This document shows positions 4,184 through 21,527 of a stretch of DNA of 64,000 bases, one piece after another. Position numbers and translations under genes: made by a program. Under the pieces are notes generated by a model. It searched no databases. It worked only from the letters and a program-made list of their open reading frames with translations, and was not told where the DNA came from. Position 1 is the stretch's first letter; each line of letters begins with the position of its first letter. The DNA comes from Schizochytrium sp. TIO01. Lineage: Eukaryota > Protista > Bigyra: Labyrinthulomycetes. Location of the stretch: positions 6,740,761 to 6,804,760 of the forward strand of contig SMSO01000031.1 in assembly GCA_004764695.1 (NCBI GenBank). The letters run 5' to 3'.

Positions 4184-5278
4184 ATGCCACGAACCTCTAC
4201 GGTCATTGGCATCACTATCGTTGTGCTTGCAGCGATTCTAGGTGTCTTCATCCATGATCCGTGGTTGACAATTGAGTTGCTGCCCTCACCATTTGGCATG
4301 ATCATGTATGGAGTGGTCACTGGGTCATTCCCACCAATGTTTGATTCATCAGCGATCTCCAATACAACTCGCTTTGACATGTGGGTCAAGCCTGGGGATG
4401 TGCTTGTTTGCACTTGCTTCAAGTGCGGAACAACTTGGACCATGAACATCGTGCATCAGTTGCGCGCTTATCACAATGCTACTTTGGCAGAAAAATTTGA
4501 AGACATTTCAGACGCAGTACCTTGGCCTCTCCTGCGCCCTGGACCTCGAGAGGGGTTTAACGAGATGCTTGAAATGTTAGATGAGCGCGAAGAGTGGTGG
4601 AATCACGAATCATACCCATACCGTGCCTGGAAAACGCAAGTATTGCCCGAAGGAACGGACAAAAAGTCAATGTTCGATGCCAACGTTCCGCTTCGAAGAG
4701 ATTTGCGTTACATCGTAGCAGTGAGAGACCCAGCAGAACAGATTGAGTCTGGCCTGCATCATTTCAGAAATCTCGGCCCTCGTCTCTCCCGCTGGGGCTT
4801 CTTCGAATTTCCAATTTGGGGAATGAAGCTGATGCTACGCCACCAAGGTGCAGCAAGTTTTCTGCAGGGCTGGCGAGATCATCTATATGAACCCAACGTC
4901 TTCCTCATGCACTACAAAGATCTAAAGAAAGACACCGAAGCACACCTTCGCCGCCTGGCAGATTTTCTTGAACTTAGTATTCCGGAAGAAGCATGGCCAG
5001 ACATTCTGCGCCGTGTGGGAATCAAATTTATGCGAGAGAATCAGTCTCGTTTTCAATATAGGTTTGAATCGAAATCAGGGAATCGAGAGGAGGTCTCCGA
5101 GTTTGTAAGGGGCCACAATAAGACCCATTTTCTCACTCGCGATGAGGCTATAGATTATCGCGAAAGCCTTCGTGGTACCGTCGATGAAGATGTATTTGAG
5201 TATGCTGCGCATGGCGGCTATGGCCTGCGGGACCAGCTCATCTCCACTGCAGCTGCAAAGTCAGAAGCATCGCCATAA
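4184..5278 (+). CDS. Signal-anchored sulfotransferase-family protein, copy 1 (364 aa)
   Basis: N-terminal hydrophobic helix VIGITIVVLAAILGVFI; 5'-PSB-like PGDVLVCTCFKCGTTW; 3'-PB-like RDPAEQIES; NVFLMHYKDLKKD...LRRLADFL, typical of the Sulfotransfer_1 fold. Confidence 0.9.
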   Translation: MPRTSTVIGITIVVLAAILGVFIHDPWLTIELLPSPFGMIMYGVVTGSFPPMFDSSAISNTTRFDMWVKPGDVLVCTCFKCGTTWTMNIVHQLRAYHNATLAEKFEDISDAVPWPLLRPGPREGFNEMLEMLDEREEWWNHESYPYRAWKTQVLPEGTDKKSMFDANVPLRRDLRYIVAVRDPAEQIESGLHHFRNLGPRLSRWGFFEFPIWGMKLMLRHQGAASFLQGWRDHLYEPNVFLMHYKDLKKDTEAHLRRLADFLELSIPEEAWPDILRRVGIKFMRENQSRFQYRFESKSGNREEVSEFVRGHNKTHFLTRDEAIDYRESLRGTVDEDVFEYAAHGGYGLRDQLISTAAAKSEASP

Positions 5279-6563
5279 CAATAATACTATAATATCTTAG
5301 AAATTATAAATTGATTTTGATTGTGTTTGGGGAGCATAGGTACAATAAGCAAATAGATAAGGTATAGATCAAGACATACGGCCGTGCTGTAGTTCAATGC
5401 GCTACCATAATTTTGCTCTCCTCACTTGGCTAAATTAAACTAGAGTGGCGCTGTGCGTTTTCTTTAAATTAACGACTAGATTGAACCTTCACTTAGATAA
5501 ATCTAGATTCCTCCTTTGAGATTGCAGAGGCGGAAATAGAGCAGAGCCTCTCCAGAAAAGTATACAAAGCGGTACAAGAAGCAGAAAATATAATTTCAGA
5601 CGTCGCTGTAACGTTATGTTATCCTAACACGCTCTTTACCAATCTTCGGAGTTAGAACAGATTATTCCAGCGAAGGCCTCAACCTACGAAGCAGCAACAA
5701 CATTTGTGCAAAGCATAACCGCCATGCTTACCTTTGATTCCAGTAGTTACTTGCCTTGGTGAGTACCTAGGTAGTACCTACAGAAAGTTCCTCGTAACCT
5801 CACATAGTGTCATGGTGCTAAGTGTGTACGTACCACCGTCTATCTTAATAAATAATCTGACCTGTTGGAACTTAAAGATTGGCTGGTTCATCGAGGCAAT
5901 GAATAACGAAGCTTCTGTCCAAGTTGGTTGGTACATAAACTTTGAAGAGGACTTGCCTAGCTACCACGCTCGGACGTGACGCGCCTTGAAGAGAGTTCTT
6001 GACACCCACCGATGTATGTTTGTGTGAGCCGGAGCTTCGAAGATTCCTTGCGAGTGTTTGCAATGCTGTTGTTCAGGACTGGCAAGATCAAGACTAGTTG
6101 ATAGTGGACTTGGATTCCTCACCTATCTTGAAGTTGATTGAACATTAATAAGTAGGAGGAGATTCTATTGATGGTATCCTTTGAGATTTTGTATTAGTTA
6201 ATTCAGTCATTGACTATGCCTTTAGACGGGCAACAAGAACTCGTGTAAGAGCAAAGCTCACAGCTGTAGGGCGTTTTCTTTAGATAAACAACAATACTAG
6301 AAAGCATTTAGGTACCTAGTACTTCAATATTCAGAAAGAAGGTGCAACATTATCGAATAAAGGTCGACCCTGAAACATCCATGAGTTATTGTTAACATTG
6401 GGCAGTGGTTCTTCTGCTTGTGTCAACGAAATACTATGTAAAGCTCAATCTAGCCAAGCTATTTACAATAGCAAAACCCGAATCGTGATTCAACATTTGG
6501 CGAATAGCCTGGACAAGGTGGAGAAGACAGTATCTTATAAGGCAACAAAAGGCCAACTCCAGC

Positions 6564-7656
6564 ATGAGCCGGTACATGGCTTTTCTAAGTGTTTCCGCCG
6601 TGATTGTGGCGGTGCTCACTGGCGTCTTTGTAAACGACCCATGGCTAGCTATTGAAATATTACCCGCACCACTGGGCATGTTCATCTATGGCTTCATTAC
6701 AAAGAACTTCCCTCCCATGATGGATTTAAGTGTAATAAAAAATGAGACTCGTTTCAACATGTATGTGCAGCCTGGTGACGTTCTCATTTCCTCTTGTTTT
6801 AAGTGTGGCACTACCTGGACCATGAACATCGTGCATCAGCTGCGTGCCTGGAACAATGAGACGCTTGCTGAAGGGTTTTCAGACATAACAGATGTTGTCC
6901 CATGGCCTATTCAACGCCCTGCACCACGTCAGGGTTTTGAAGAAATGATGGAGCTGCTGCAGAAAAAGAATGAATGGTGGAATCATAAAACATATCCGTA
7001 TCGTGCCTTTAAGCTTCACTTTTTACCTGAGAAGAGTAACGTGAAATCTGTATTTAAGCCTCTGCTACCTCTAAGAAGCGATCTTCGTTATATTGTGGTG
7101 GTGCGAGATCCAGCAGAACAGATTGAATCAGGTCTTCATCACTTTCGCAACTTTGCTCCGCGTCTTGCCAAATGGGGAATGATCCAATTGCCAATATGGC
7201 TCACGAAAATTATGCTGAAGAAACAAAGCTCTGCAGTTCACTTACAAGGCTGGCGGGATGAGCTTGCAGAAGCTAACGTTTTTCTCCTTCACTACACTGA
7301 CCTAAAAGACGATACAGAAACCCTGGCTTCGACGCCTCGCCAAATTTCTTGAGCTTGATATTCCAGAAGACGCATGGCCCTTGATCCTTCGTCGCGTCGG
7401 CCTGAAATCAATGCGTGACAACCAAGACAAATTTCAGTACAGACTTGGAACAGAAGGTGATGATACGGAAAAGGTCGTGGAGTTTGTGAGAGGTCACAAC
7501 AATACCCACTTTTTGACGCGTGATGAAGCTGTACAATACCGCAATGAGCTCAGAAATACCGTTGATAAGGATATCTTTGAGTATGTTGTTCATGGTGGAG
7601 ACAAGCTTCGTAATGATTTAATTTCTGTCGCTGCAAGAAAACGTGCGGTTCCCTAG
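6564..7656 (+). pseudogene. Sulfotransferase-family copy 2 with a +1 frameshift (pseudogene or sequencing error)
   Basis: ORFs 6564-7352 and 7381-7656 join into one 363-aa paralogue if one C of CCC at 7321-7323 is removed (copy 3 has GAAACCTGG, copy 2 GAAACCCTGG). The corrected length, 1092 nt, equals copy 3. Confidence 0.85.
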
Positions 7657-8783
7657 AGTAGTGAAAGCAAATTATGCATTTCACTTGCATCTTTCAATCT
7701 GCGTGGACTTTTCCTCGTATAGGTTTTGCAAATTCGCTTCCTATCGTGGAAATCTATCAAACAATGCGTGCTTTTTTTGGGCAAGAGACACGAACATGAC
7801 ACCCAGGATATTGGACACGTCTATGAGCTTTCTACAAACTCCTTGCACTAATTGTTCTACCAGCAATCAGTTTTGCATGAAGGACGGTTCTGTTGCAAAG
7901 TCCAGGCTTCATAATATTAGATTTCTGCCCAGCATATTCTGTACGCTCCGCACCCGTCTTAGAACTTCAGACAGATAAGCTACTGCCAAGACATCATCAC
8001 TACTTTTATGCTCACCTTTTTATGCTCACCTTGTCCGGCTCGTAGGTGCGGTCCTTAACCAAAGTTAGGTTTTGTTCTAAGATGTTTCATATGCTGAACT
8101 AAAAGCGGCCACTAAGGGTATACCCTGGGTGTTCAAAGATCTTTACTAGGGCAGATAAGTATTTTAATCAGGTTACACATAGGGTTCTCAGGTTCTTTGC
8201 TGTGACACAATGCGAAAAGAACTTCGTCATTTTTGTTTCTATTGGTATTGCCGTATCCGAAAAAGTGAAAAATTACGGTGCAAAGATTATATATGTACGA
8301 GAGCCGCAACGTCTCGATCACAGAGAGAATATAACTTAGCAGCTTGTTACCTAACACTGTTGTCTGTAGTCATCCATAGAGTCACTCAGACATGATTAAG
8401 CAGGTCCGCAGACTGTGTGTAGTACATACTGTTTAAAAAAATTATGAACTCTATATTGAACTCGTTCTTCTTGTCTTTTCTAATCTTAAAAAAAATGTTG
8501 TTTAACTCCTACTCGTGGTACGTACTTCGTTAGTACAAATTTTTGAGTAACTTTCTCGCACTTGGAAGTCCCTTTGTATATTAATAAATGATGGAGGCTA
8601 GAAGAGCCTATGAACGAAGAACATTCATGCATGTACAATTAAAATAAAGATCAAAGTTCATTGCCACCTGCAGAAAGCAAAACCAAACCGTGCTCTGGTG
8701 GGCAGAGCAATAACAGCGCATGCGCGAAGAGACACCAGGAGATAATACGCAACGTATCGTGCGACAAGCAAGCGTTAGGAGAA

Positions 8784-9875
8784 ATGGGTAGAGCTATGCT
8801 CTTTGTTGGCGCCGGCGCCGTTGTCCTTGCGGTATTCTCAGGCGTATATGCTAACGACCCTTGGCTTGCCATTGAGACGCTTCCGGTGCCGTTTGGGATA
8901 ATTGTGTATGGCATCTTTTCGGGGGAATTCCCTCCTTTGTTTGACCTGAGCGCAATCACAAATCGCACTCGCTTCGAAATGTATGTGAAGCCTGGTGATG
9001 TGGCAATTGCATCTTGTTTTAAATGTGGCACTACCTGGACTATGAACATCGTTCATCAATTGCGTGCCTGGAACAACAAAACGCTTGCTGAGGGTTTTGA
9101 AGACATTACAGATGTTGTCCCATGGCCTATTCAACGTCCTGCACCTCGTGAGGGCTTTCAAGAGATGTTTGATTCGCTTCAAAAGCGCAAGGAGTGGTGG
9201 GACCATGAGTCGTATCCGTATCGTGCCTTTAAGTTTCAGGTATTGCCTGAAGGTAGCAACATGAAATCTATGCACAAGGCCCAAATACCCATGAGAAAGG
9301 ATCTTCGATACATTGTGGTTGTAAGAGACCCTGCAGAACAAATTGAATCAGGCCTTCATCACTTTCGCAACCTAGCTCCACGCCTTTCTCGATGGGGCAT
9401 GATGGAAATGCCTCTTTTTGTTATGAAGAAAATGCTTAAGATGCAAGGCTCAGCAGCTTACTTGCAAGGTTGGCGGGATGAGCTTGCTGAGCCTAATGTT
9501 TTTCTTATGCACTACGCGGACCTTAAAAAGGATACAGAAACCTGGCTTCGACGCCTCGCCAGATTTCTTGAGCTTGATATTCCGGAAGACGCATGGCCTT
9601 TGATCCTTCGTCGCGTCGGCCTGAAATCAATGCGTGACAACCAAGACAAGTACCAATACAGACTTGAAACCGAAGGTGGTGGCAAAGAAAAAGTGGTTGA
9701 GTTTGTGAGAGGCCACAACAAGACTCACTTTTTGACACGTGACGAAGCTGTAGAATACCGCAATGACCTCGCAAGCACTGTTGATAAGGATGTATTCGAG
9801 TATCTTGTCCACGGTGGAGATGATCTTCGAAATGAATTGATTGCTACCGCTGCTGCGAAGAGGGCCTCTCCTTAG
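8784..9875 (+). CDS. Signal-anchored sulfotransferase-family protein, copy 3 (363 aa)
   Basis: First ATG (MGRAML) aligns with paralogue starts; SCFKCGTTW, RDPAEQIES and FVRGHNKTHF motifs shared with the other copies. Confidence 0.9.
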   Translation: MGRAMLFVGAGAVVLAVFSGVYANDPWLAIETLPVPFGIIVYGIFSGEFPPLFDLSAITNRTRFEMYVKPGDVAIASCFKCGTTWTMNIVHQLRAWNNKTLAEGFEDITDVVPWPIQRPAPREGFQEMFDSLQKRKEWWDHESYPYRAFKFQVLPEGSNMKSMHKAQIPMRKDLRYIVVVRDPAEQIESGLHHFRNLAPRLSRWGMMEMPLFVMKKMLKMQGSAAYLQGWRDELAEPNVFLMHYADLKKDTETWLRRLARFLELDIPEDAWPLILRRVGLKSMRDNQDKYQYRLETEGGGKEKVVEFVRGHNKTHFLTRDEAVEYRNDLASTVDKDVFEYLVHGGDDLRNELIATAAAKRASP

Positions 9876-11413
9876 TCAAAATCTAAGTAAATTGAAAATA
9901 AAATTTGGTGTGACCCTATTGTTTGCTCTTTAACTTTCGGAGATCATTTGCTTAGTGTACGAATCCTCTCGTCAACGTTTGAACTTTCCTATTATTTACT
10001 TGAAGGTTATATAAAATATACATATTTTTTTGGTTTGAGTATGGAGCATAGCAGGATTCCATTCAGTGCTATACTCCGCCCATTTAAAGCTCTATACGTG
10101 GTACATATTTTCTCTTTTAGGGGGCATACGCTCGTGCAAGTTGGAAACATTGAAGTCCCAAGTTTGGGGTTATGATACTCTAGATCAGTCTAACGCTTCC
10201 AGTTGATACATACACCATGATTATTCTTCATGCCTGAACAGTTTGTTATTATATTTCTCGCTTGTCAACTAGCCAGGATCCCTCTTTAGCGAAATGGAAA
10301 GAGGCAAACATATATGCTGATGTGGGCTTTTACCCACTGTTGAGAGTGGTGGGTGCCCGGTAACGAACCTTGATACTACAGCTACTGTGCCTGCCAATCT
10401 ACAACGGTTTTCCCAAGCAAACGGATTGGTACGAGTTACACTAACTAGTGAGAGCAGAGCCTGTTCTAAATTTTGTGCTTTAAGGAAGCGACCAACCCAC
10501 AAAAGTTATGGCATCATATAACTCGGCTAAATGTGTAGATAGCGACAGAACGAGTTGGAGTGAGAAGGCGAGTGCCACTTTCACACGATCTCTTATTATG
10601 AATATTAAAAAAAATCGACATATGCCTTAATTTGCACGGCGGGGAGAGGTGTCCTACAAGAGCAAAATAGGTACCATTCACTTTTGCTTGAATCGTCCAA
10701 TCTTTATACTCTATCGTAATTTGGAATCCAATCGGATACTTCTTCTCCACGCGTAGATATCGAAGATATCTTTACCGGACGATCATTCTGACCTAAGTCC
10801 GAGGTCCGTGCATTGCCTTCCAGTCGCAATCAAATTCCTGGTCCTACAGGTACTAGTTGTTCTAGGCTACTTGTATCGTTTTTCATCTTGAGTGCGCAGC
10901 AAATTGGTAGAACTCTCTTGTTTATGGTACTTTGAAGATTTTTTCTGACGTTCTTCACGGGCACAGCGAACATTCCACTGAAATACAAATTTAACACCAA
11001 AATGCACCATTGCTGATATATATTGCATATCTTCTTGCTATTGCGCCTGGATCTCTCTCATTGATTATTTCCATCAGGTCGAGCCCCCGTCTTTGGTTCA
11101 AAGGTACCTTGGGATCAATCTTGTATGGAAATGTGATATTTGTTGATTGATTGAAGTTGTATGTATATGCTCCTGTAGGTGACTGCTAGTTCCTTATAAT
11201 AATTAACTTTATGCTGGGTGCTTCATGTCACAACTATAAAAAGAAAAGAACTTCGTGCGTTGCTTTGAAGTTGATTTTTCTTTTTCAGGCCATTGCAAAG
11301 CCTGCAAGCTTGCAGCAAAACCGCAACTAGCTAAACCACTGAATTGGCTGGTTGGCCGTTGCGTGCATGTGTGAATCAAGTAGTTCTCGCGTGCATTGAA
11401 AGATTCTATGAGA

Positions 11414-12511
11414 ATGGGACGCGCCATGACGATCCTTAGCATCCTTGCTGTTGTTCTAGCCGCGTGCGCTGGGATCTTTGTTAGCGACCCGTGGCTAGCA
11501 GTTGAGATACTACCACCTCCTCTGGGTATGTTTGTCTTTGGCGCGATAACTGGACAAATGCCTCCGTTGTTTGATCTCTCTGCCATTCGAAACGAGACTC
11601 GCCTCAATATGATTGTAAAACCTGGCGATGTGTTCGTCGCGTCTTGTTTCAAGTGTGGCACCACATGGACGATGAATATAATTCACCAGCTACGTGCATG
11701 GCACAACGAGACTCTAGCAGAAACCTTTGAAGATATTACAGACGTTGTACCATGGCCCATAAAACGCCCTGCACCTCGTACCGGCTTCCAGGAAATATAC
11801 AGCCTGCTTCAGGAGAGAAACGAATGGTGGAACCATGAATCATATCCCTTCCGCGCGTTCAAGGTGCAGATTATGCCAGAAGGTAAAGCACTCGACGACA
11901 AACACAAATTTGATATGCAAGTTAGAAAGGATCTTCGCTATATCGTTGTCGTGCGCGATCCCGCGGAGCAGATTGAATCCGGACTTCACCACTTTCGTAA
12001 CCTTGAACCCAAGCTCTACCAGTTCGGCATGCCAGAGATGTCGGTTTGGGAAATGAAGCAGATGCTTGCGATGCATGGCTCGGCAGTGTACCTTCAAGCT
12101 TGGCGTGACTACGTTGCAGATCCGAATGTTTTTCTGGTGAATTACAAAGATCTCAAAAGGGATACCGAAGTGTGGCTTCGTCGTCTTGCCAAGTTTCTTG
12201 ATCTTGAGATCCCTGAAGATGTCTGGCCTACAGTTATTCGCCGTGTTGGAATTAAGTGGATGCGAGATAACCAGTCAAAGTTCCAGTACAGACTTGATGA
12301 CAACTTAAAGAAGGAGAAGAAGGTTGTTGAATTCGTCCGTGGTCATAACAAGACTCATTTTCTGACACGCGACGAGGCTATCGCATATCGCGACAAGCTT
12401 GCCGATGACGTTGATGAGGATGTTTTTGAATATCTTATCAAGGGCGGCGATGAACTTCGCGAGAAATTGATAGTCGCTGCTGCTGCTGCTGCCAAAACTC
12501 GATCGCCATAG
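11414..12511 (+). CDS. Signal-anchored sulfotransferase-family protein, copy 4 (365 aa)
   Basis: MGRAMT start chosen by alignment to copy 3 (alternative ATG at 11408); same PSB/PB motifs. Confidence 0.9.
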   Translation: MGRAMTILSILAVVLAACAGIFVSDPWLAVEILPPPLGMFVFGAITGQMPPLFDLSAIRNETRLNMIVKPGDVFVASCFKCGTTWTMNIIHQLRAWHNETLAETFEDITDVVPWPIKRPAPRTGFQEIYSLLQERNEWWNHESYPFRAFKVQIMPEGKALDDKHKFDMQVRKDLRYIVVVRDPAEQIESGLHHFRNLEPKLYQFGMPEMSVWEMKQMLAMHGSAVYLQAWRDYVADPNVFLVNYKDLKRDTEVWLRRLAKFLDLEIPEDVWPTVIRRVGIKWMRDNQSKFQYRLDDNLKKEKKVVEFVRGHNKTHFLTRDEAIAYRDKLADDVDEDVFEYLIKGGDELREKLIVAAAAAAKTRSP

Positions 12512-13259
12512 ATGCACCACGAGTGGGTATCAAGCCTTTATTGTTGAAGAATCATAATTATTCATACTATTTGCCATTTGTCATAGTAGTTCTGCTTGAT
12601 AAATTGGAACATGAATGAGTTGGCACGAACATAAGTTGCCTAGAGTTTATTTTTTAGGTCAAATTTTTAAAGATTAAAAACCTGACAAATCTTACCTAAT
12701 GTCAGAAAGTAGTCCCAGTCCTTCTCCAACGAATGAAAGGGCGAACCATTGTTTTTAAACTTACAAAGTAAAGGCAAAAGTCATATATAAATTTAGAATT
12801 ATTTTAGATTTAAAGCAGCTCTTGCAATATATTAGAGCTGAGCCTTGATATTCACTATGGAGTCCAAGTTCTACCGTCACACCGTCAGGAATTTGGGTAA
12901 TACATATCGCTAAAACAAGCTCTCCTCTCGCGCAGTTGCAAAATGTCTCCCAACTATGCAACTGCAATATATAAAGTTCCTGAGACATGCACTTTCTTCC
13001 AAAAATTGCAACTCTGCACTTGCGCATCGCAGTTGGGACTGCGTCGATGTAAACTATTGTACAGGATACTAACATTGGTAAATCTTATCTTGTTGACAGC
13101 TCGAGTAGTTCTGTTCAACTTAACCATTTGCTTGACGAGTTCTATATGTTATATTGTTCGGGTTGTTCAACATGTTCACCTTAATCTTACTTATTTTGAT
13201 CTCAGGCCATTTAGGAAATAAGATATAGGTACATAGACGATAGTAATAGTAATAGTAGA

Positions 13260-13490
13260 AATGATAAAAATAATAATGTTAGATTATTTTTTTAATATTT
13301 ACTTAAAACATTTAAAACATTTACGAGTAACTTACAATTAATTTTAATTTTTAAAAAATTAGTATCGTGGGGGAAGTGAAAAAAAAGTAATCATGATGGT
13401 AATGGTAAAACAAACTTTAAAAAAAAACTTTAAAAAAAACCTTTTTAAAAAAACTTCAAAAAAAAAAAAAAAAAAAAACAGAAAACAGAA
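13260..13490. repeat. AT-rich low-complexity island with poly(A) run
   Basis: Repeated AAAAAAACTTT-like units and an A run at about 13458-13478. Confidence 0.7.
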
Positions 13491-16339
13491 AAGACAGCGA
13501 CTCAGACCACTCGTATAGCATTGGAGCAAATTTGATTTATGTCCTATGCTGATACACCTTCATAATGCCTAGGAACTGAGGAACTCTTTGATTTTTGCGT
13601 CATCGAAATTATTTACCAGACAAAAATTCGCGAATCGATCCAAATGATGTCTCCTTCACCTCCAACCTTGAAAATATCCTTAACATACAGGCTGGGGTTT
13701 TCGCAAGAGCGTTCTAGTTCAAAAGGACGGAGGTGCGCGGATTTGCTTTTGTCAGCACGAGTTCTTCATGGTCAGGTATAAGTCGCAGAAACATGCGATC
13801 ATCTTGTTTCGTTGACCTTTTAACGGCCGGGACAGCAGCCTTGCGTTTGGATGGAAAGCAGCCACAGGATGATTGTGGCAGGGGTGGGAAAGCACAAGAG
13901 AACAGGAGCTAATCTAGAATGCTATCTCGAAGAACTTCTTCGACCTTGAATTCGAAAAAGTACATCAAATACTGGTTGAGGCGCAACTGATCAAAAATAC
14001 CCACAAAGACTTCGAAGAATTACTCTGTGTCTATATCAAACAAAGATTTGGTAAATATAAACCGTCTACTCTTTATTAATTTCCCCCCTTTTTGTAAATG
14101 CACCTTCGAACCTGCTTGGAACAAAAGCGGAACTGCGTCTTTATGTTGCAGAACTTACTTCGAGTTTGCTTGGCAACATAGAAGCTTTCAAACGTGCCGT
14201 TCAGCTGGGACTACCCACCTACACCTAGCTAGCCTGCATAACTCTAGGTAGTTACTGTGCGTATTTAATTATTGATGATCTCAACGCTACATTACATAGC
14301 GAGGTACTAGTACTGTTTCGCTAAAATGGTTCCCGAGTGAGTTCGTTTACTTAGCAGGGAATTAAAAGCTGGCCTCTTTCCGGAGACTGCGACAGGAATT
14401 TGCGTCACAGAAAAGGCTTAAAGTCAGAGAGGCGCTCAAGAGAGAGGCAGTTAGACATCCTATTATTTATGCGCCGGTTCATGACTCGCGCATCGTTGCG
14501 TGCCCTTCACTTTGGTTCTCAATACAGGTAGTATTAGGCGCTACCTAAGTACCTACCTGTCACTTGAGCCACTTCATAGTGGATCGTTTCTATATTTCTT
14601 CTTCTTTTCTTCTACTCACAATGAAAATAGTTTATTCGTCTGCCCAAGGATTGCTGTTGGCTCAACTGGCAATAGTCGAATGTACTTTCGCAATCTTCAA
14701 CTTAGTTATCTTTCATTGTCTAAAAGAAAACTTATTGTACAGAGGTTGTCTTCATTTCTGGTCTCACTTACAATATTTAGGATATAAGGGACTAGGACAA
14801 CTTATGAGACAAAACTAAAAATTGCGCATTTATCAGACTACGTAGTTGTCAACACTCAGACCCAAGTGGATGAAGCCCGATGGTGAATGTGGCGAACCTG
14901 TGAACCAGAGGTGGTTTAGTTAGTGAGAACCAAAGTCACAAAGAATGACTGTGCAATCCCACCGAAATGTAACGCAAGGGTACTTATCTAAGAATGCTCG
15001 ATTTGACATGGACAACAATTGCATGCTTGTTGCACCCTGGAAACGCCTAGTGCGAGGGTGTATTCCAAAGGCTTGTTAAGCTTGATGATTTTCCAGAATG
15101 TAGAGGAATTAGAAAAAAAAATGATCGCATATCAGCCACGAAGGACTGCAAATTTCTATATTCTTTCCTTGAAGATAGCAAATCCGAAAAGTATTTCCAA
15201 CGTCGAGTCTGTCCAATGAGATTGCAGGTTGAAACAATTGGTGTTTGCTCGAGTGTGTTCAGGCAACTTCTCAACAAGAACAAAGAATTAGCTGTCATTG
15301 TGCAATATGTCCACAAGGGAAGATTATCGAGATAAGCTATGGAAATAAGAAGTAGGCGAGTATAGCAAGATTTCATGACTGACTTAAACATTCGAATTGA
15401 GTAACTGGATCCCCCAAGGGTTAACGAGAGGTTTACGTATCTTCAACTATTACAAGAAACTGTTAATTACATAGAAATGAAAAGAAATGGGGCAAGTATG
15501 CCGCAACCTAACTTCAAGTTATATGTTCCATGTATCAAAATTGGTTGGGGTAGATTGTAATGATATACTCCATTTTTCTTTTTTCATTTTTCAAACTCGA
15601 CAAGCAAAGGGTGCAGGTAGCCTTTTGGGTTACAATACAGTGAAATACAATCTTGATTTTCTTTGCAAAGTTTTGGCCGTTCTTACAGAGCTTACTATTC
15701 TCCTTTTATTATTACAATGGTGTGTTCCGTTTAGAAAAGCAGAGGTTGGGTTCTGTAACCTGAACTAAAATAGTCTACATTTTGGCCTGCTTCTTAATCA
15801 GCCTCACCCGTCCTCTCTTACTGTTGTCGTCGTTTACACTCGATGAATCAATCCGGCGTCTTGCGCGCTAGGAGCTCGGACATTGTATTTAATCAATCAG
15901 TTTCTGCAGTACCTACCTTCCTTCTCGGCAGACAGTGCTAAATCGGCACACGGGACTGTGCTTTTCGCTTGGGTCTTTGCCCAAGTAAAAGGGTTATTAC
16001 TACAAATTCTGAGTTCTGTGAAACTGATTAATTTCGTTCATTTGGTTGGTCAGCCAAGAAATTAAAGCTCAGCAGAAGAAACAAAAAATTATCTTCAGTG
16101 CCGGGACTCCCTTTGATCCTTCGGCGGACGGTAGCAAACAGGGAATCATTTACTCGGCTGGAACGTGCGGCCTGCCAGCCACCATCAGCATCGCATCATT
16201 TCGCTCATTGTCCATCAAATTTCCAATTGGAGTTCTGCTTCGATCGAAGATCCTAGGCACGAATTGGTGTTGTAGTAGAGACCAAGGTCAATGATAGAGA
16301 GTGAGTGAGAAAGAGAGGGAAGGCAAAATATGAAGACAT

Positions 16340-16500
16340 TGTAATGCTTTCATAAACTTGACATTTTTTATTTTTTTTATTCTATCAAATGGTTTTTATT
16401 TATTAAAAAAAGTAGTTTTCAACATTATTATTATTTAAAAAGAAAAAAGGAAAAAAAAAAAAAAAAAAAAAAAGAGAAGGAAAAGCTCACTAGATAAAAA
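16340..16500. repeat. AT-rich island with poly(A) run
   Basis: T-rich stretch followed by an A run at 16451-16473. Confidence 0.7.
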
Positions 16501-16913
16501 AGGAAGAACAACGTACCACACCCTCTTCGGCAGCGGTAGTGCTGCGCATAATTACTTCTAGGAGGAGAAGCTCACGAGTCGCGAGCCGGCGAAATGCGAA
16601 GGAGTGATTTCAACACTGGTTGATTGATTTCAAGATTGATTGATTTCAAGATTGGCTTGGATGGAATGGCTTCTGCTCTGTCCTTCGCCATACCCGGAGG
16701 TGAATACCTCATTGGTGCCTGCCTGCCTACCTATTCAGCCATTCGAATGCAACACAAAGGTGGCCGAAATGAAAGCTTCAGTGGCGAATCAGAATTTGGC
16801 GAAGAGAAAACACCGCTGGCAATCGAAACATAAACCCCAAAAGAATCATAAAGAATGACCATCCATTCTCCCACTCACCACGTAATCGCAGAGCTCTTAA
16901 TTCCAACCCACGA

Positions 16914-17037
16914 AAACAAACAAACAAACAAACAAACAAACAAACAAACAAACAAACAAACAAACAAACAAACAAACAAACAAACAAACAAACAAACAAA
17001 CAAACAAACAAACAAACAAACAAACAAACAAACAAAC
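16914..17037 (+). repeat. (AAAC)n microsatellite, about 31 units
   Basis: Read directly from the sequence. Confidence 0.97.
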
Positions 17038-17740
17038 CAACAGAAACCACTTTTGTTCGAACAAAGACCTTTTCTTGCTTTGTATTTCGCTTTTCCCCCC
17101 TACAAACACTAGCGTGCTGCTCTCGCTAGTAGCTCCTACGCACAATCAGCAAGAGGCGGTGCTAGGAACACGTGGGGAAATCAGGGGCACCTCCCTCCCA
17201 TGAGGCCGAGTTTTACTATGGCAAAACCCAGCGGAGGAACCATGTCACCTACAGTTCGTCTCCGCGTTCCAGTGAAACGTTCTTACAGTTCTTGCAGGCG
17301 AGGAAGAAAACGAACTAACGAAAACCCAGAGAGACAGACAGACAGACTGCCTGGGATGTGGCGCATGCATCCATCCATGCATGCTCGCGTGCTTGCTTGC
17401 TTGCATGGATACATACATACACATTTGTATTCGCATGCCATCACCTTCACCACCACCACCACCCTCGCCACATCACATCACAGTCAGCTATCGACGCGGA
17501 CCTCCTTCTCGTAGAATCAAGGTAAACCTCTGTGGCACGTGTGCGCAGGTCCACAGAAGACTGAGAGGATCCGCATTCGTATCGCCTCTCAGCGCTCTTT
17601 TAGGCTCTGTGCCGTCTATCATCGACGGCGCAATCACTCAATCAGTCAATCAGTCAATCAGTCAGTCAGTCAATCAATCAAAAGATCATCAAATTGCACT
17701 TGGCCACGAGGGATCTCTCGCACGGCGAAGGAAACTGTGA

Positions 17741-17743
17741 AGA

Positions 17744-17782
<39 letters not shown>

Positions 17783-17783
17783 A
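17741..17783 (+). repeat. (GAA/GAG)n trinucleotide repeat
   Basis: Read directly from the sequence. Confidence 0.85.
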
Positions 17784-19249
17784 GACGCCTTGGTGCTCAA
17801 GGACTCGCTGGCTGGTGCTGCTGGCAGGATGAGAGGCCGCGAGGGAGAGGCGCATTGGCTTTGGTCGTGGACGCCGATCTGCGCTTTGCCAAAGGAGGGC
17901 GTAGGCAGCGCTAGGACCGGCCTAGCAAGGTACCAGCGCTCGTAGCACTCGCCGGTTAATGCTACGAGAATTGAAGACTACTGCAGCAAGCAATCTTGCG
18001 CGAGCATGAAGAAAAGCACCGCACAGACCATCGCGATCTCTGGAGGTTAACTTGTTCGGCAGGTTATGTGGCAGCTCAGGTGACGCAGGCAGTCATTCAC
18101 TGATAGGTAATCATGAAGGAATGAAGGAGCGTCTCTATCGTGCTTTCCTTCTTCGAACATCGGGCAAGTCATTATAATTGTAATAGCGGTAGTAAGTCCA
18201 TCCATATATTCTCGATTTTAGTTTCATTTTAGTATTAATATTAGGATCAACATGTTTTATTTTTAAAAAGGTCACGGTGTTTATATGTTAAGATAGTTTT
18301 ATATCATGTTATTTAAATTTTCTTATTATTTATATAATTTAAGTAATAATAATAATCATAATAATGATAGACCTTAGAAGAGTGTGTGTATCTGCCCAAA
18401 AACACAATCCGTGAGCCAATCTCTGAGCCTGCCTTGCTTCAGAGAGACGGAAAGAGAGGGATTGGGCGTTGAGGAGGAGAAGGCAAGCGTGGTGTACGCT
18501 GATCTATATACGACAGCGAGCGATTATGGGACATGAGAATCAGGGAAACTCAAGTGAGAATCAGGGAAACCTTGATTTTGATGGAAAGAGAAGAACAAAA
18601 GGCCTCTCGCTACCTACTAATACGTATCTTTATTACAATATGGTTATAATATGGTCAGCAACATGGAAGAGGTGGCTTTTAGCTGGCTAACAGTGGGGTA
18701 AGAAGTGCTAGTCATCGGAGTCAGTGAAGAGAGAGCCAAAGAACTTTAGTGCTGCATTCATTCACTCACTCATCAAGCAAAAGACCAAGAAGGAGGAGGA
18801 GGCGACACTCGAAGAAAGAACACAATGGAGAAACCAGACGAACATCATCACATCACTACAACTTCTTCAAGCCAAGCAGAAAGGAAGAACTTCGCGAAAC
18901 AAAAAAGAAACCAACTCATTTCACCCCTTACGCGAACAAACAATGTAAAACATACTTACCTACCTACTTGTTTCAAATGAAAGGAACCCTATAGAAATCG
19001 ATTACTTTCAAGTTATTCTTTTTATCATTAGAGTATGATAGCATGCATGGCGAAATTAAAAATTATCGTATCCGGTACCAAATTTATTTTGAATGAAACA
19101 GGTAAGATAGATGCACTGCCGATCAAAGAAATTCAGGAATCAAGATCGATAAATCAAGAAAGAAATAAAACAGATCGACTGCAGCTGGGACTAGAGAGAT
19201 GGGCACAAAGCGATGACTTCTTGGTATCTACGGATGTATAGGTACTCAG

Positions 19250-19407
<158 letters not shown>

Positions 19408-19689
19408 ACCTTATCTCTGATCGTGGTCAATCCCTTATGTTAGGCTCGTCGATATGTTCGAAATTGAACTATCTTTATCTTTTCTTTATTTCTTTCTCTC
19501 TATCTCTATCTCTATATATGTAACTAATGTAAATGTTTGCTTATCTGTGATTTAAAAAAAATAAAAAAATAATAATAATAATGATCATAATAACAAATAA
19601 TAATAAATCCTTTGTTTATTTGTTTGTTTAGTTTTTAAAAGAGATCCAAGAGAGCAAGAGAGAAGATAGCTAAGTACGTAAGTAGGTAG

Positions 19690-20000
19690 CGAACTAACTA
19701 ATTTACTTACTTATTTACTCACTTACTTACCCACTGACTCGCTCACTAACTTGCTAACTAATATCCTTACTAACTAACGATCCAACTAAATTTACTAACT
19801 AACTAACTAACTAACTTACTAACTCACTAATTACTAGCTTACTTACTTACTAACTTACTAACTCACTAATTACTAGCTTACTTACTTACTAACTTACTAA
19901 CTTACTTACTTACTAGCTTACTTACTTACTTACTTACTCACTAACTTACTAACTTACTTACTTACTTACTTACTTACTCACTCACTCACTAACTAGTACT
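19690..20000 (+). repeat. Compound (ACTT/ACTA/ACTC)n microsatellite with a 39-bp higher-order duplication
   Basis: Unit CTAACTTACTAACTCACTAATTACTAGCTTACTTACTTA occurs twice in tandem from 19811. Confidence 0.9.
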
Positions 20001-20159
20001 TGCGATGAAAGCACTCCTATTCCCTCAGGTAGGTAGGTACTAGGCCCCTCTATCATGATATGACTACAATGATTTGCGGATTTATGTGTCTCAGCACTGG
20101 TAGGAGTGGGGTAGTGGCATATAGGCGTAGTGGCGATAGTAGCAGTGCGTAGTAGAATA

Positions 20160-20202
20160 GGAAAGAAGGAGACAGAGAAAGAGAGACAGAGAAAAGAGAG
20201 AA

Positions 20203-20233
<31 letters not shown>
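20160..20233 (+). repeat. Purine-rich (AG)/(ACAG)n repeat
   Basis: GAGACAGAGAAAGAGAG...ACAGACAGACAG read directly. Confidence 0.8.
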
Positions 20234-20234
<1 letters not shown>

Positions 20235-21527
20235 CCTTGTGGCGGCTTTGCGTGGGTGAGGCTGCGCGAGCTGCGTGGCGTCGAGAAGGCGAAAGCGTCT
20301 CTCTCGAGGTAGCAGGCCGCTGGGTAGAGAAGTGGAGGCAGGCTCCGTCTCGACCGCAGCGAGCGAGCGATTCAGGCCTGGCCTGCCGCAGATCGATCGT
20401 CCGGCACCGAGCGAACATAGCTACAGCTAGCTAGCTAGTCTGATAATATTAGAGCTAGCTAGCTCTCGCTCGCACTTGCGTGGACGCTCGTGGACCTCAG
20501 CGGCAGGTCTGACGAGAGATATAAGCCCAGCAAGGCAAATTGAGCACCTCCACGCTTATCGTTGCAGGCGCTATCGAATCGAGTCCGGGCTGGGGACGGC
20601 GCTTTCTTTATAGCTTTCATTTCTTTCATTCTTTTTTCATTCATTCTCTGTTGAGATTGTTTCTTCTTTCTTTTCTTTTTTCCTTCTGTTCTTTCTGCGC
20701 GAGATCAATCAATCTTTTTTGAAAGTTTGATTTACTGAACCTGGCGGTGCCCTGTAGCAGCTACAGCTAGGATCCGCAAGGTAGAGGAGGTTAAGTACTG
20801 TTGATTGCAGACACAGCAATACGGAAAGAGATCGTAGAAGAAAGGAAATTTGGCGTACTTCTACTACTAATAGTTTTACTACTCCTTCCACTCCTTCTAC
20901 AACATTTTATTTGTAGAAAACGACAACCAGAAGGCGCAAAGTTGGATTTATTATTTTGACTTGTTCGCGTGTGTGGTGTAAAGCAGCTCCTGTGGTATCT
21001 TCTTATCGTCTTTTGGTGTCTCTGTGTTGCCTTTATTTTTGTGTCCACCTTTTTTGACTGAGCTCCTGCGTGATTGGTTTCATAGGACCTCGTCGCCCAG
21101 ATTTGCTTCATCTTTTGTTTTTGGTTTGGTTCGGTTTGGTTTCTGATCCACACACTATCTCAGATACAAGTATTTGGACACATATTGTGTGAGGATTAAT
21201 TCGTTAAAATATCCCGCCGATTCGTGCTGATTGGATACACCAGCCCAGCCCCCGCGGCAGTCCTCAGATTTATCTGCGGAATTACACTCATCCTATTGAT
21301 ACAATCTGTCAATCTTTCTTCTTTCGCCTTTTCCAATTTTGGAAAGCGCACGGACCCTCGTTCGTGCCGGGAAACCATTGATAAACACAGGGCGCCAAGG
21401 TCGCCAACTTTTCTATTCTATTTTCTTCGAGGACGAGCATCGTCACCACTACAATAATCAGTGCTAGGCGCACGCAAGAAGTCATTTCTACTACAACCAT
21501 TGTCAGCTTGAGAATATCTTCTCCAAA

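Follow-up and report, generated by a model that had tools for sequence, protein, structure and literature searches.

A tandem array of sulfotransferase-like genes in Schizochytrium sp. TIO01 belongs to a clade that lost the canonical catalytic histidine

Cytosolic-type sulfotransferases of the PF00685 family, such as SULT1E1, SULT1A1 and SULT2A1, carry a K-x-H motif whose His is regarded as their hallmark base. The heparan-sulfate NDST and 3-OST domains (PF00685) belong to the same superfamily as Golgi-lumenal type-II enzymes and use a non-His base, Glu. In mouse SULT2A8, a 7-alpha-hydroxy bile acid sulfotransferase, His99 is replaced by Leu and the base has moved to His48, and the enzyme is active (PMC8134075). 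Here, we analyze four tandem SULT-like genes in a 64-kb stretch of DNA from Schizochytrium sp. TIO01 (contig SMSO01000031.1, positions 6,740,761 to 6,804,760; hereafter the window). The window copies share with the cytosolic SULTs the fold, the 5'-phosphosulfate-binding (PSB) Lys, the 3'-phosphate-binding (3'-PB) Arg/Ser and the Lys of K-x-H. They differ from them by a Gln in place of the His in three copies, by an N-terminal anchor and conserved sequons, which predict a lumenal rather than a cytosolic protein, by an RKGxxGxW loop four residues shorter and by Cys78 and Cys81 flanking the PSB Lys. Neither the fold and the motifs nor the absence of the canonical His from a SULT is new in itself; the novelty lies in a whole clade without the His, predicted to be membrane-anchored and tandemly expanded, with a probable natural revertant.

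SULT2A8 resembles the window copies in its substituted canonical His, in its conserved site for 3'-phosphoadenosine 5'-phosphosulfate (PAPS) and in belonging to a tandemly expanded family (PMC8134075). Its activity means that loss of the His alone is no proof of a pseudoenzyme. In SULT2A8, however, the new His48 is the PSB-loop residue that immediately precedes the Trp; the window copies have Thr84 there, so that any relocated base would have to sit elsewhere. NDST and 3-OST matched the profile weakly and along part of the domain (E 1e-4 to 8e-6); the cytosolic SULTs are much nearer to the window proteins. The closest sequence relatives, at 25-35% identity, are a SULT-like family of marine protists (P0049-P0103) and a set of bacterial proteins (P0003-P0046). 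The protist proteins match the window copies in length and in having an N-terminal hydrophobic helix, and their sources include MMETSP transcripts and a diplonemid (Namystynia). Every one of these relatives has K-[ST]-H; in the window clade, which is nested among them at the end of a long stem, the His is lost. We found no tested function for any member of this protist and bacterial family. A literature search gave no paper that deals with the four genes, with sulfotransferases of thraustochytrids or with a Gln at this position; other papers that it returned concern PAPS-independent enzymes and human SULTs, in which the His is always present.

The four open reading frames (ORFs) are paralogous, lie head to tail and are 61-74% identical to one another over their coding sequence (Table 1). 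All four match Pfam PF00685 (Sulfotransfer_1) with E values of 2e-12 to 2e-21 and 47.5-77.1 bits, against a curated cut-off of 22. The AlphaFold2 model of copy 3 adopts the alpha/beta SULT fold with a mean predicted local distance difference test score (pLDDT) of 94.6, and Foldseek ranks SULT2A1, SULT1E1 and SULT3A1 as its nearest structures, with a probability of 1.00 and a TM-score of 0.64-0.71 normalized to the target.

Table 1. Coordinates of the gene copies and of the features discussed, in window positions. Residue 152 is numbered from the MxRxM start in each copy; aa, amino acids; nt, nucleotide.
Feature	Position	Strand	Description
Copy 1	4184-5278	+	364 aa, intact; Gln152 = CAA 4637-4639, context RAWKTQ
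Copy 2	6564-7656	+	ORF 6564-7352, then +1 frame to stop 7654-7656; His152 = CAC 7017-7019, context RAFKLH
Copy 3	8784-9875	+	363 aa, intact; Gln152 = CAG 9237-9239, context RAFKFQ; slowest-evolving copy
Copy 4	11408-12511	+	intact; first ATG 11408; Gln152 = CAG 11867-11869, context RAFKVQ, numbered from ATG 11414
5'-PSB loop, copy 1	4421-4447	+	CFKCGTTWT; second most conserved block across copies
Shortened 3'-phosphate loop, residues 309-316	~5100-5125, ~7480-7505, ~9700-9725, ~12330-12355	+	copies 1-4
Gene-conversion tract	7314-7440 (copy 2), partner ~9534-9660 (copy 3)	+	93-97% nt identity vs ~60-88% elsewhere

The general-base His of the K-x-H motif is a Gln in copies 1, 3 and 4 and is present only in copy 2. 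A profile built from 113 members of the family hits human SULT1E1 with an E value of 4e-61 and places its 'frafktH' column on the K-T-H of 'IVKTHLPP', and every one of the bacterial relatives (25-35% identity) reads R-R-A-F-K-[TS]-H in this column. By this profile alignment, residue 152 is the homologue of the SULT catalytic His. An earlier note on this DNA, made from the sequence, had read the codons and motifs of residue 152 as they are given in Table 1 and had equated the site with the catalytic His, and both readings hold. Loss of a residue needed for catalysis in the family, one mark of a pseudoenzyme, is found at position 152.

To place this substitution among its relatives, a HMMER scan covered 1.84 billion cluster representatives and returned 1393 relatives, from which the best 150 were taken; 182 sequences were aligned in all. 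The 152 column holds His in 175 of the 182, so that the Gln of copies 1, 3 and 4 cannot be put down to chance. The seven other rows are copies 1, 3 and 4 and P0047 with Gln, P0048 with Thr, and two stray rows, one with the His shifted by one column (a likely misalignment) and one with a possible Glu. P0047 and P0048 are each known from one sequence on a short Joint Genome Institute (JGI) environmental contig. In a maximum-likelihood tree, they form one clade with the four copies (support 100/100). The stem of this clade is very long (1.05 substitutions per site) and is nested within the membrane-anchored protist family whose other members all have His. Because the five sequences with Gln or Thr and copy 2 fall in this one clade on its long stem, the sequences date the loss of the His to the stem of the six-member clade, before the array. 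The earlier note had presented the loss as a feature of the array, and this part does not stand: Gln and Thr are confined, apart from the two stray rows, to a clade that includes the environmental P0047 and P0048. That Gln, Thr and His all occur at position 152 within the clade argues that its members no longer depend on this residue.

The protist relatives P0049-P0103 are in themselves a sizeable and apparently uncharacterized SULT1-like anchored family of ~350-390 aa, found in MMETSP, in the diplonemid and in environmental contigs. Their bacterial relatives are soluble and ~30% identical.

The branching order of the four copies is (c1,(c4,(c2,c3))), and it is recovered with support of 92/88 when the gene-conversion tract shared by copies 2 and 3 and column 152 are removed. 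Two state changes at position 152 suffice on this tree, a loss on the stem and a regain in copy 2, also without the tract and the column, while a continuous presence of His in the copy 2 lineage needs four independent losses. The His of copy 2 is thus probably a one-base reversion from CAG to CAC, which agrees with the earlier note in its pairing of copies 2 and 3 and in its parsimony. This most parsimonious reading is favored but not proven, because a tree that places copy 2 outside copies 1, 3 and 4 is not quite rejected by the approximately unbiased (AU) test (p 0.054), and on that tree loss plus regain ties with two independent losses. Donation of the His to copy 2 by gene conversion from another paralogue was ruled out, as the sole other match in the genome is 27% identical.

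The reading frame of copy 2 is broken in this assembly by one extra base in GAAACCCTGG (7321-7325), relative to copy 3. Four of four other public runs, from four studies, have one base fewer there and keep the frame open; the missing base is 7321 in X5, 7324 in X8 and 7325 in X15 and X18. The resulting three in-frame versions differ among strains and encode Trp, Arg or Leu at codon 254. Either the sequenced strain carries an allele of its own at this site or the assembly is in error; outside this assembly, the array consists of three Gln genes and one intact His gene. We therefore rejected the frameshift as proof that copy 2 is a pseudogene. The description of copies 1, 3 and 4 as the three intact copies holds, while the break in copy 2 comes down to a single base that is absent from all four other runs. 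The His codon of copy 2 (7017-7019) shows no difference among the differences listed for the four runs, with 29 differences over the stretch not listed.

Copies 2 and 3 also share a recent conversion tract, with the frameshift at its 5' edge. Third codon positions are identical at 43 of 50 sites within the tract and at 173 of 313 elsewhere (Fisher p 2e-5). With P0047 or the N-terminal piece of copy 2 as the query, no further clade members and no orthologue of copy 2 came up, likely because short-read contigs break at the tract common to copies 2 and 3.

The four genes are under purifying selection. The ratio of nonsynonymous to synonymous divergence (dN/dS, omega) between copies 2 and 3 is 0.17-0.19, while in the other pairs dS is saturated and dN is 0.24-0.32, and 16 of the 24 strain differences listed within coding regions are synonymous. 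The branch of copy 2 has an average omega of ~0.24, as estimated from pairwise distances. The intergenic spacers of the array have no mutual similarity left; with dS saturated and dN low, this indicates that the duplications are old and that selection has preserved the coding sequences, in line with the diverged yet maintained paralogues of the earlier note. Copies 2, 3 and 4 also have transcript support. Copy 4 has an MMETSP transcript, and in run X18 copies 2 and 3 reach a word depth of several hundred to several thousand-fold against 0-6 in the spacers, a difference of up to ~400-fold, with copy 1 barely covered. Such a contrast in depth is yielded by RNA and not by DNA, so that the X18 contigs are RNA-like; the label 'RNA' in the run record is itself a guess.

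These data bear on whether the array is made of relics of once-active sulfotransferases that are drifting toward pseudogenes. The lost His, the frameshift of copy 2 in this assembly and the gene-poor surroundings would all agree with decay. Yet three full-length ORFs have survived past synonymous saturation at dN/dS values well below 1, identity between the coding sequences is still 61-74% where the spacers have lost all similarity, transcripts support the genes and copy 2 is intact in the four other runs. Decay is contradicted by the selection data and essentially excluded, and we give it hardly any weight.

A further possibility is that copy 2, having regained its His, acts as the sole catalytic subunit, with the three Gln paralogues as regulatory partners in hetero-oligomers. 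Copy 2 is the only copy with His152, has an open frame in the four other runs, lies under RNA-like X18 contigs and retains the low branch omega given above. However, its His is derived and sits on the faster-evolving of two sisters, with 35 changes of its own vs 14 for copy 3 (p 0.003). In addition, the otherwise conserved Gly47, Gly157 and Pro237 are altered in copy 2, its frame is broken in this assembly, and P0047 and P0048 have no known partner that bears a His. With residue 152 varying among Gln, Thr and His across the clade, we consider a single catalytic partner, as put forward in the earlier note, improbable.

We then asked which parts of the proteins have been kept. Among the four copies, conservation is highest in the 3'-PB helix RDPAEQIESG (residues 181-190, 1.00), followed by the PSB loop (81-90) and the C-terminal PAPS loop (311-320), at 0.95 each. 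It is lowest at residues 151-170 (0.28-0.40), at and just past the former His, and then at 201-220 and 291-300. The PSB motif xKxGTTW is present in all four copies (Lys80, Gly82, Thr83, Thr84 and Trp85), and the family as a whole shows no variation at Lys80, Lys150, Arg181 and Ser189. Since the segments that contact the cofactor are the most constrained, the proteins of the clade probably still bind PAPS. The core of the site is thus as the earlier note had described it, with the PSB Lys and the 3'-PB Arg and Ser retained in all copies, but the canonical RKGxxGxW loop is shortened by four residues. In the four copies this 3'-phosphate loop reads R-G-H-N-[KN]-T-H-F, which keeps the Arg and one Gly and has an Asn where 155 of ~165 relatives have Gly. 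It is 95% conserved among the copies and carries another N-x-T sequon.

Several residues are invariant in the six clade members and rare elsewhere, namely Cys78, Cys81, Asn98 with Thr100, Arg118, Gln186 and Glu188. Asn98 and Thr100 form an N-x-T sequon within a four-residue insertion. In all six members, Cys78 and Cys81 flank the PSB Lys80 in a C-x-K-C motif (4415-4426 in copy 1); Cys78 is found in 2% of the His-bearing relatives. If the proteins are lumenal, a disulfide between the two Cys could span the PAPS phosphate loop. His193 is found in the four window copies only. The relatives have a Phe at this position, which the SULT1E1 profile alignment places on Phe141/142 of estrogen sulfotransferase, the acceptor gate of that enzyme.

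The N-terminus points to the secretory pathway. Residues 5-24 are hydrophobic and are modeled as a helix (2-24) in copy 3, and three N-x-S/T sequons are kept in all four copies despite changes of their middle residue, two of them also in P0047. The conserved sequons together with the N-terminal helix argue for a type-II, lumen-facing, glycosylated protein of Golgi type.

Altogether, the window appears to hold four old tandem duplicates of a type-II membrane-anchored, Golgi-type lumenal protein with the fold of the cytosolic SULTs. The ancestor of the small clade formed by the copies and P0047/P0048 replaced its general-base His, and position 152 has since drifted among Gln, Thr and His. PAPS would still be bound, in the secretory lumen, and sulfate transfer would be retained with the acceptor activated by a different residue. 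The candidates are Glu188, invariant in the clade and next to Ser189, and His193, which is confined to the four copies and takes the position of the acceptor-gate Phe. Alternatively, transfer could proceed on an acceptor that needs no strong base, such as an amine or an acidic hydroxyl. The hypervariable residues 151-170 and the loops at 201-220 would then give the paralogues different acceptors. We put the chance that the proteins still transfer sulfate, by another base or on an acceptor that needs none, at close to even.

Several points weigh against this reading. Gln is unable to act as a base, and Glu188 and His193 are candidates by virtue of their position in the sequence. His193 is missing from P0047 and P0048 and cannot account for a clade-wide loss, and a SULT2A8-type His in the PSB loop is not present in any copy, all of which have Thr84. 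The shortened 3'-phosphate loop, present in four of four copies, could impair PAPS binding. Moreover, the retained cofactor motifs are equally expected in a nucleotide-binding pseudoenzyme, and a variable residue 152 beside a hypervariable stretch could be the sign of a relaxed, dead active site.

The Gln copies may instead be maintained pseudoenzymes that bind PAPS, 3'-phosphoadenosine 5'-phosphate (PAP) or a sulfated ligand in the lumen without catalysis, as sensors, lectin-like binders or scaffolds. This would fit the clade-wide loss of the general base, the long stem and the shortened 3'-phosphate loop, as well as the contrast between cofactor-contacting segments, which are the most conserved, and the former catalytic neighborhood, which is the least. 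Purifying selection and transcript evidence imply that the genes do something. On the other hand, Lys150 (the equivalent of Lys106) and Ser189 have been retained over a very long divergence, and variation is concentrated in the acceptor loops. Diversifying arrays of active SULTs likewise vary mainly in their acceptor loops. With SULT2A8 active despite the loss of its canonical His, we regard maintained pseudoenzymes as unlikely, though worth serious consideration. The earlier note had left the choice between pseudoenzymes and enzymes with a different chemistry; its premises, a lost His and kept PAPS residues, stand, while the loss of the His by itself does not make a pseudoenzyme.

Two mechanisms thus fit the data, either a relocated or dispensable base or a pseudoenzyme. 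In the boldest form of these proposals, which we think doubtful, the clade would represent an undescribed catalytic solution for PAPS-dependent sulfuryl transfer in the secretory lumen, with a clade-specific residue (such as Glu188, next to the catalytic Ser) or the acceptor itself activating the nucleophile, or else the Gln copies would be lumenal PAPS/PAP sensors that regulate how the cell-wall material of the thraustochytrid is sulfated, with copy 2 as a natural revertant.

A clade that has long been without the hallmark base of cytosolic-type SULTs under purifying selection, together with a candidate Gln-to-His revertant, offers a natural system for studying how essential the base is, where alternative bases may sit and whether SULT-fold pseudoenzymes exist. 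It also brings to notice a large uncharacterized membrane-anchored SULT-like family in marine protists. The cell walls and exopolymers of thraustochytrids are sulfated, and we know of no sulfotransferases assigned to them. The practical value is moderate, as the find is restricted to one lineage and its function is putative.

Proteins matching the array were also recovered from other data. A variant of copy 1 (P0001), on a 17.8-kb contig of the Logan assemblies, has 2 residue differences and retains KTQ, and near-identical proteins to copy 4 (P0201-P0203) from an MMETSP transcriptome and Logan retain KVQ. The MMETSP sample is presumably Aurantiochytrium limacinum; its header gives a taxon number that does not correspond to this species, apparently by a typo.

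The 64-kb window contains no fifth copy, and none of the neighboring genes, which encode a PP2C, a Kelch/EGF protein, an ELO and a lipocalin-like protein, suggests a functional connection with sulfation. The ~9 kb downstream of the array (12512-21527) contain no ORF of at least 120 aa save two short ones on the minus strand, with a GC content down to 0.35-0.41, and the 4 kb upstream of copy 1 are likewise poor in ORFs. Across the genome (64 Mb, 37 contigs), copy 3 as a query has a single other match, on piece C6 at ~1492305-1493072, which is 27% identical and keeps K-S-H. This match is part of a 517-aa ORF (L006 1393-2946, minus strand), in which a ~230-residue N-terminal extension of unknown nature is followed by a canonical SULT domain with K-S-H-H.

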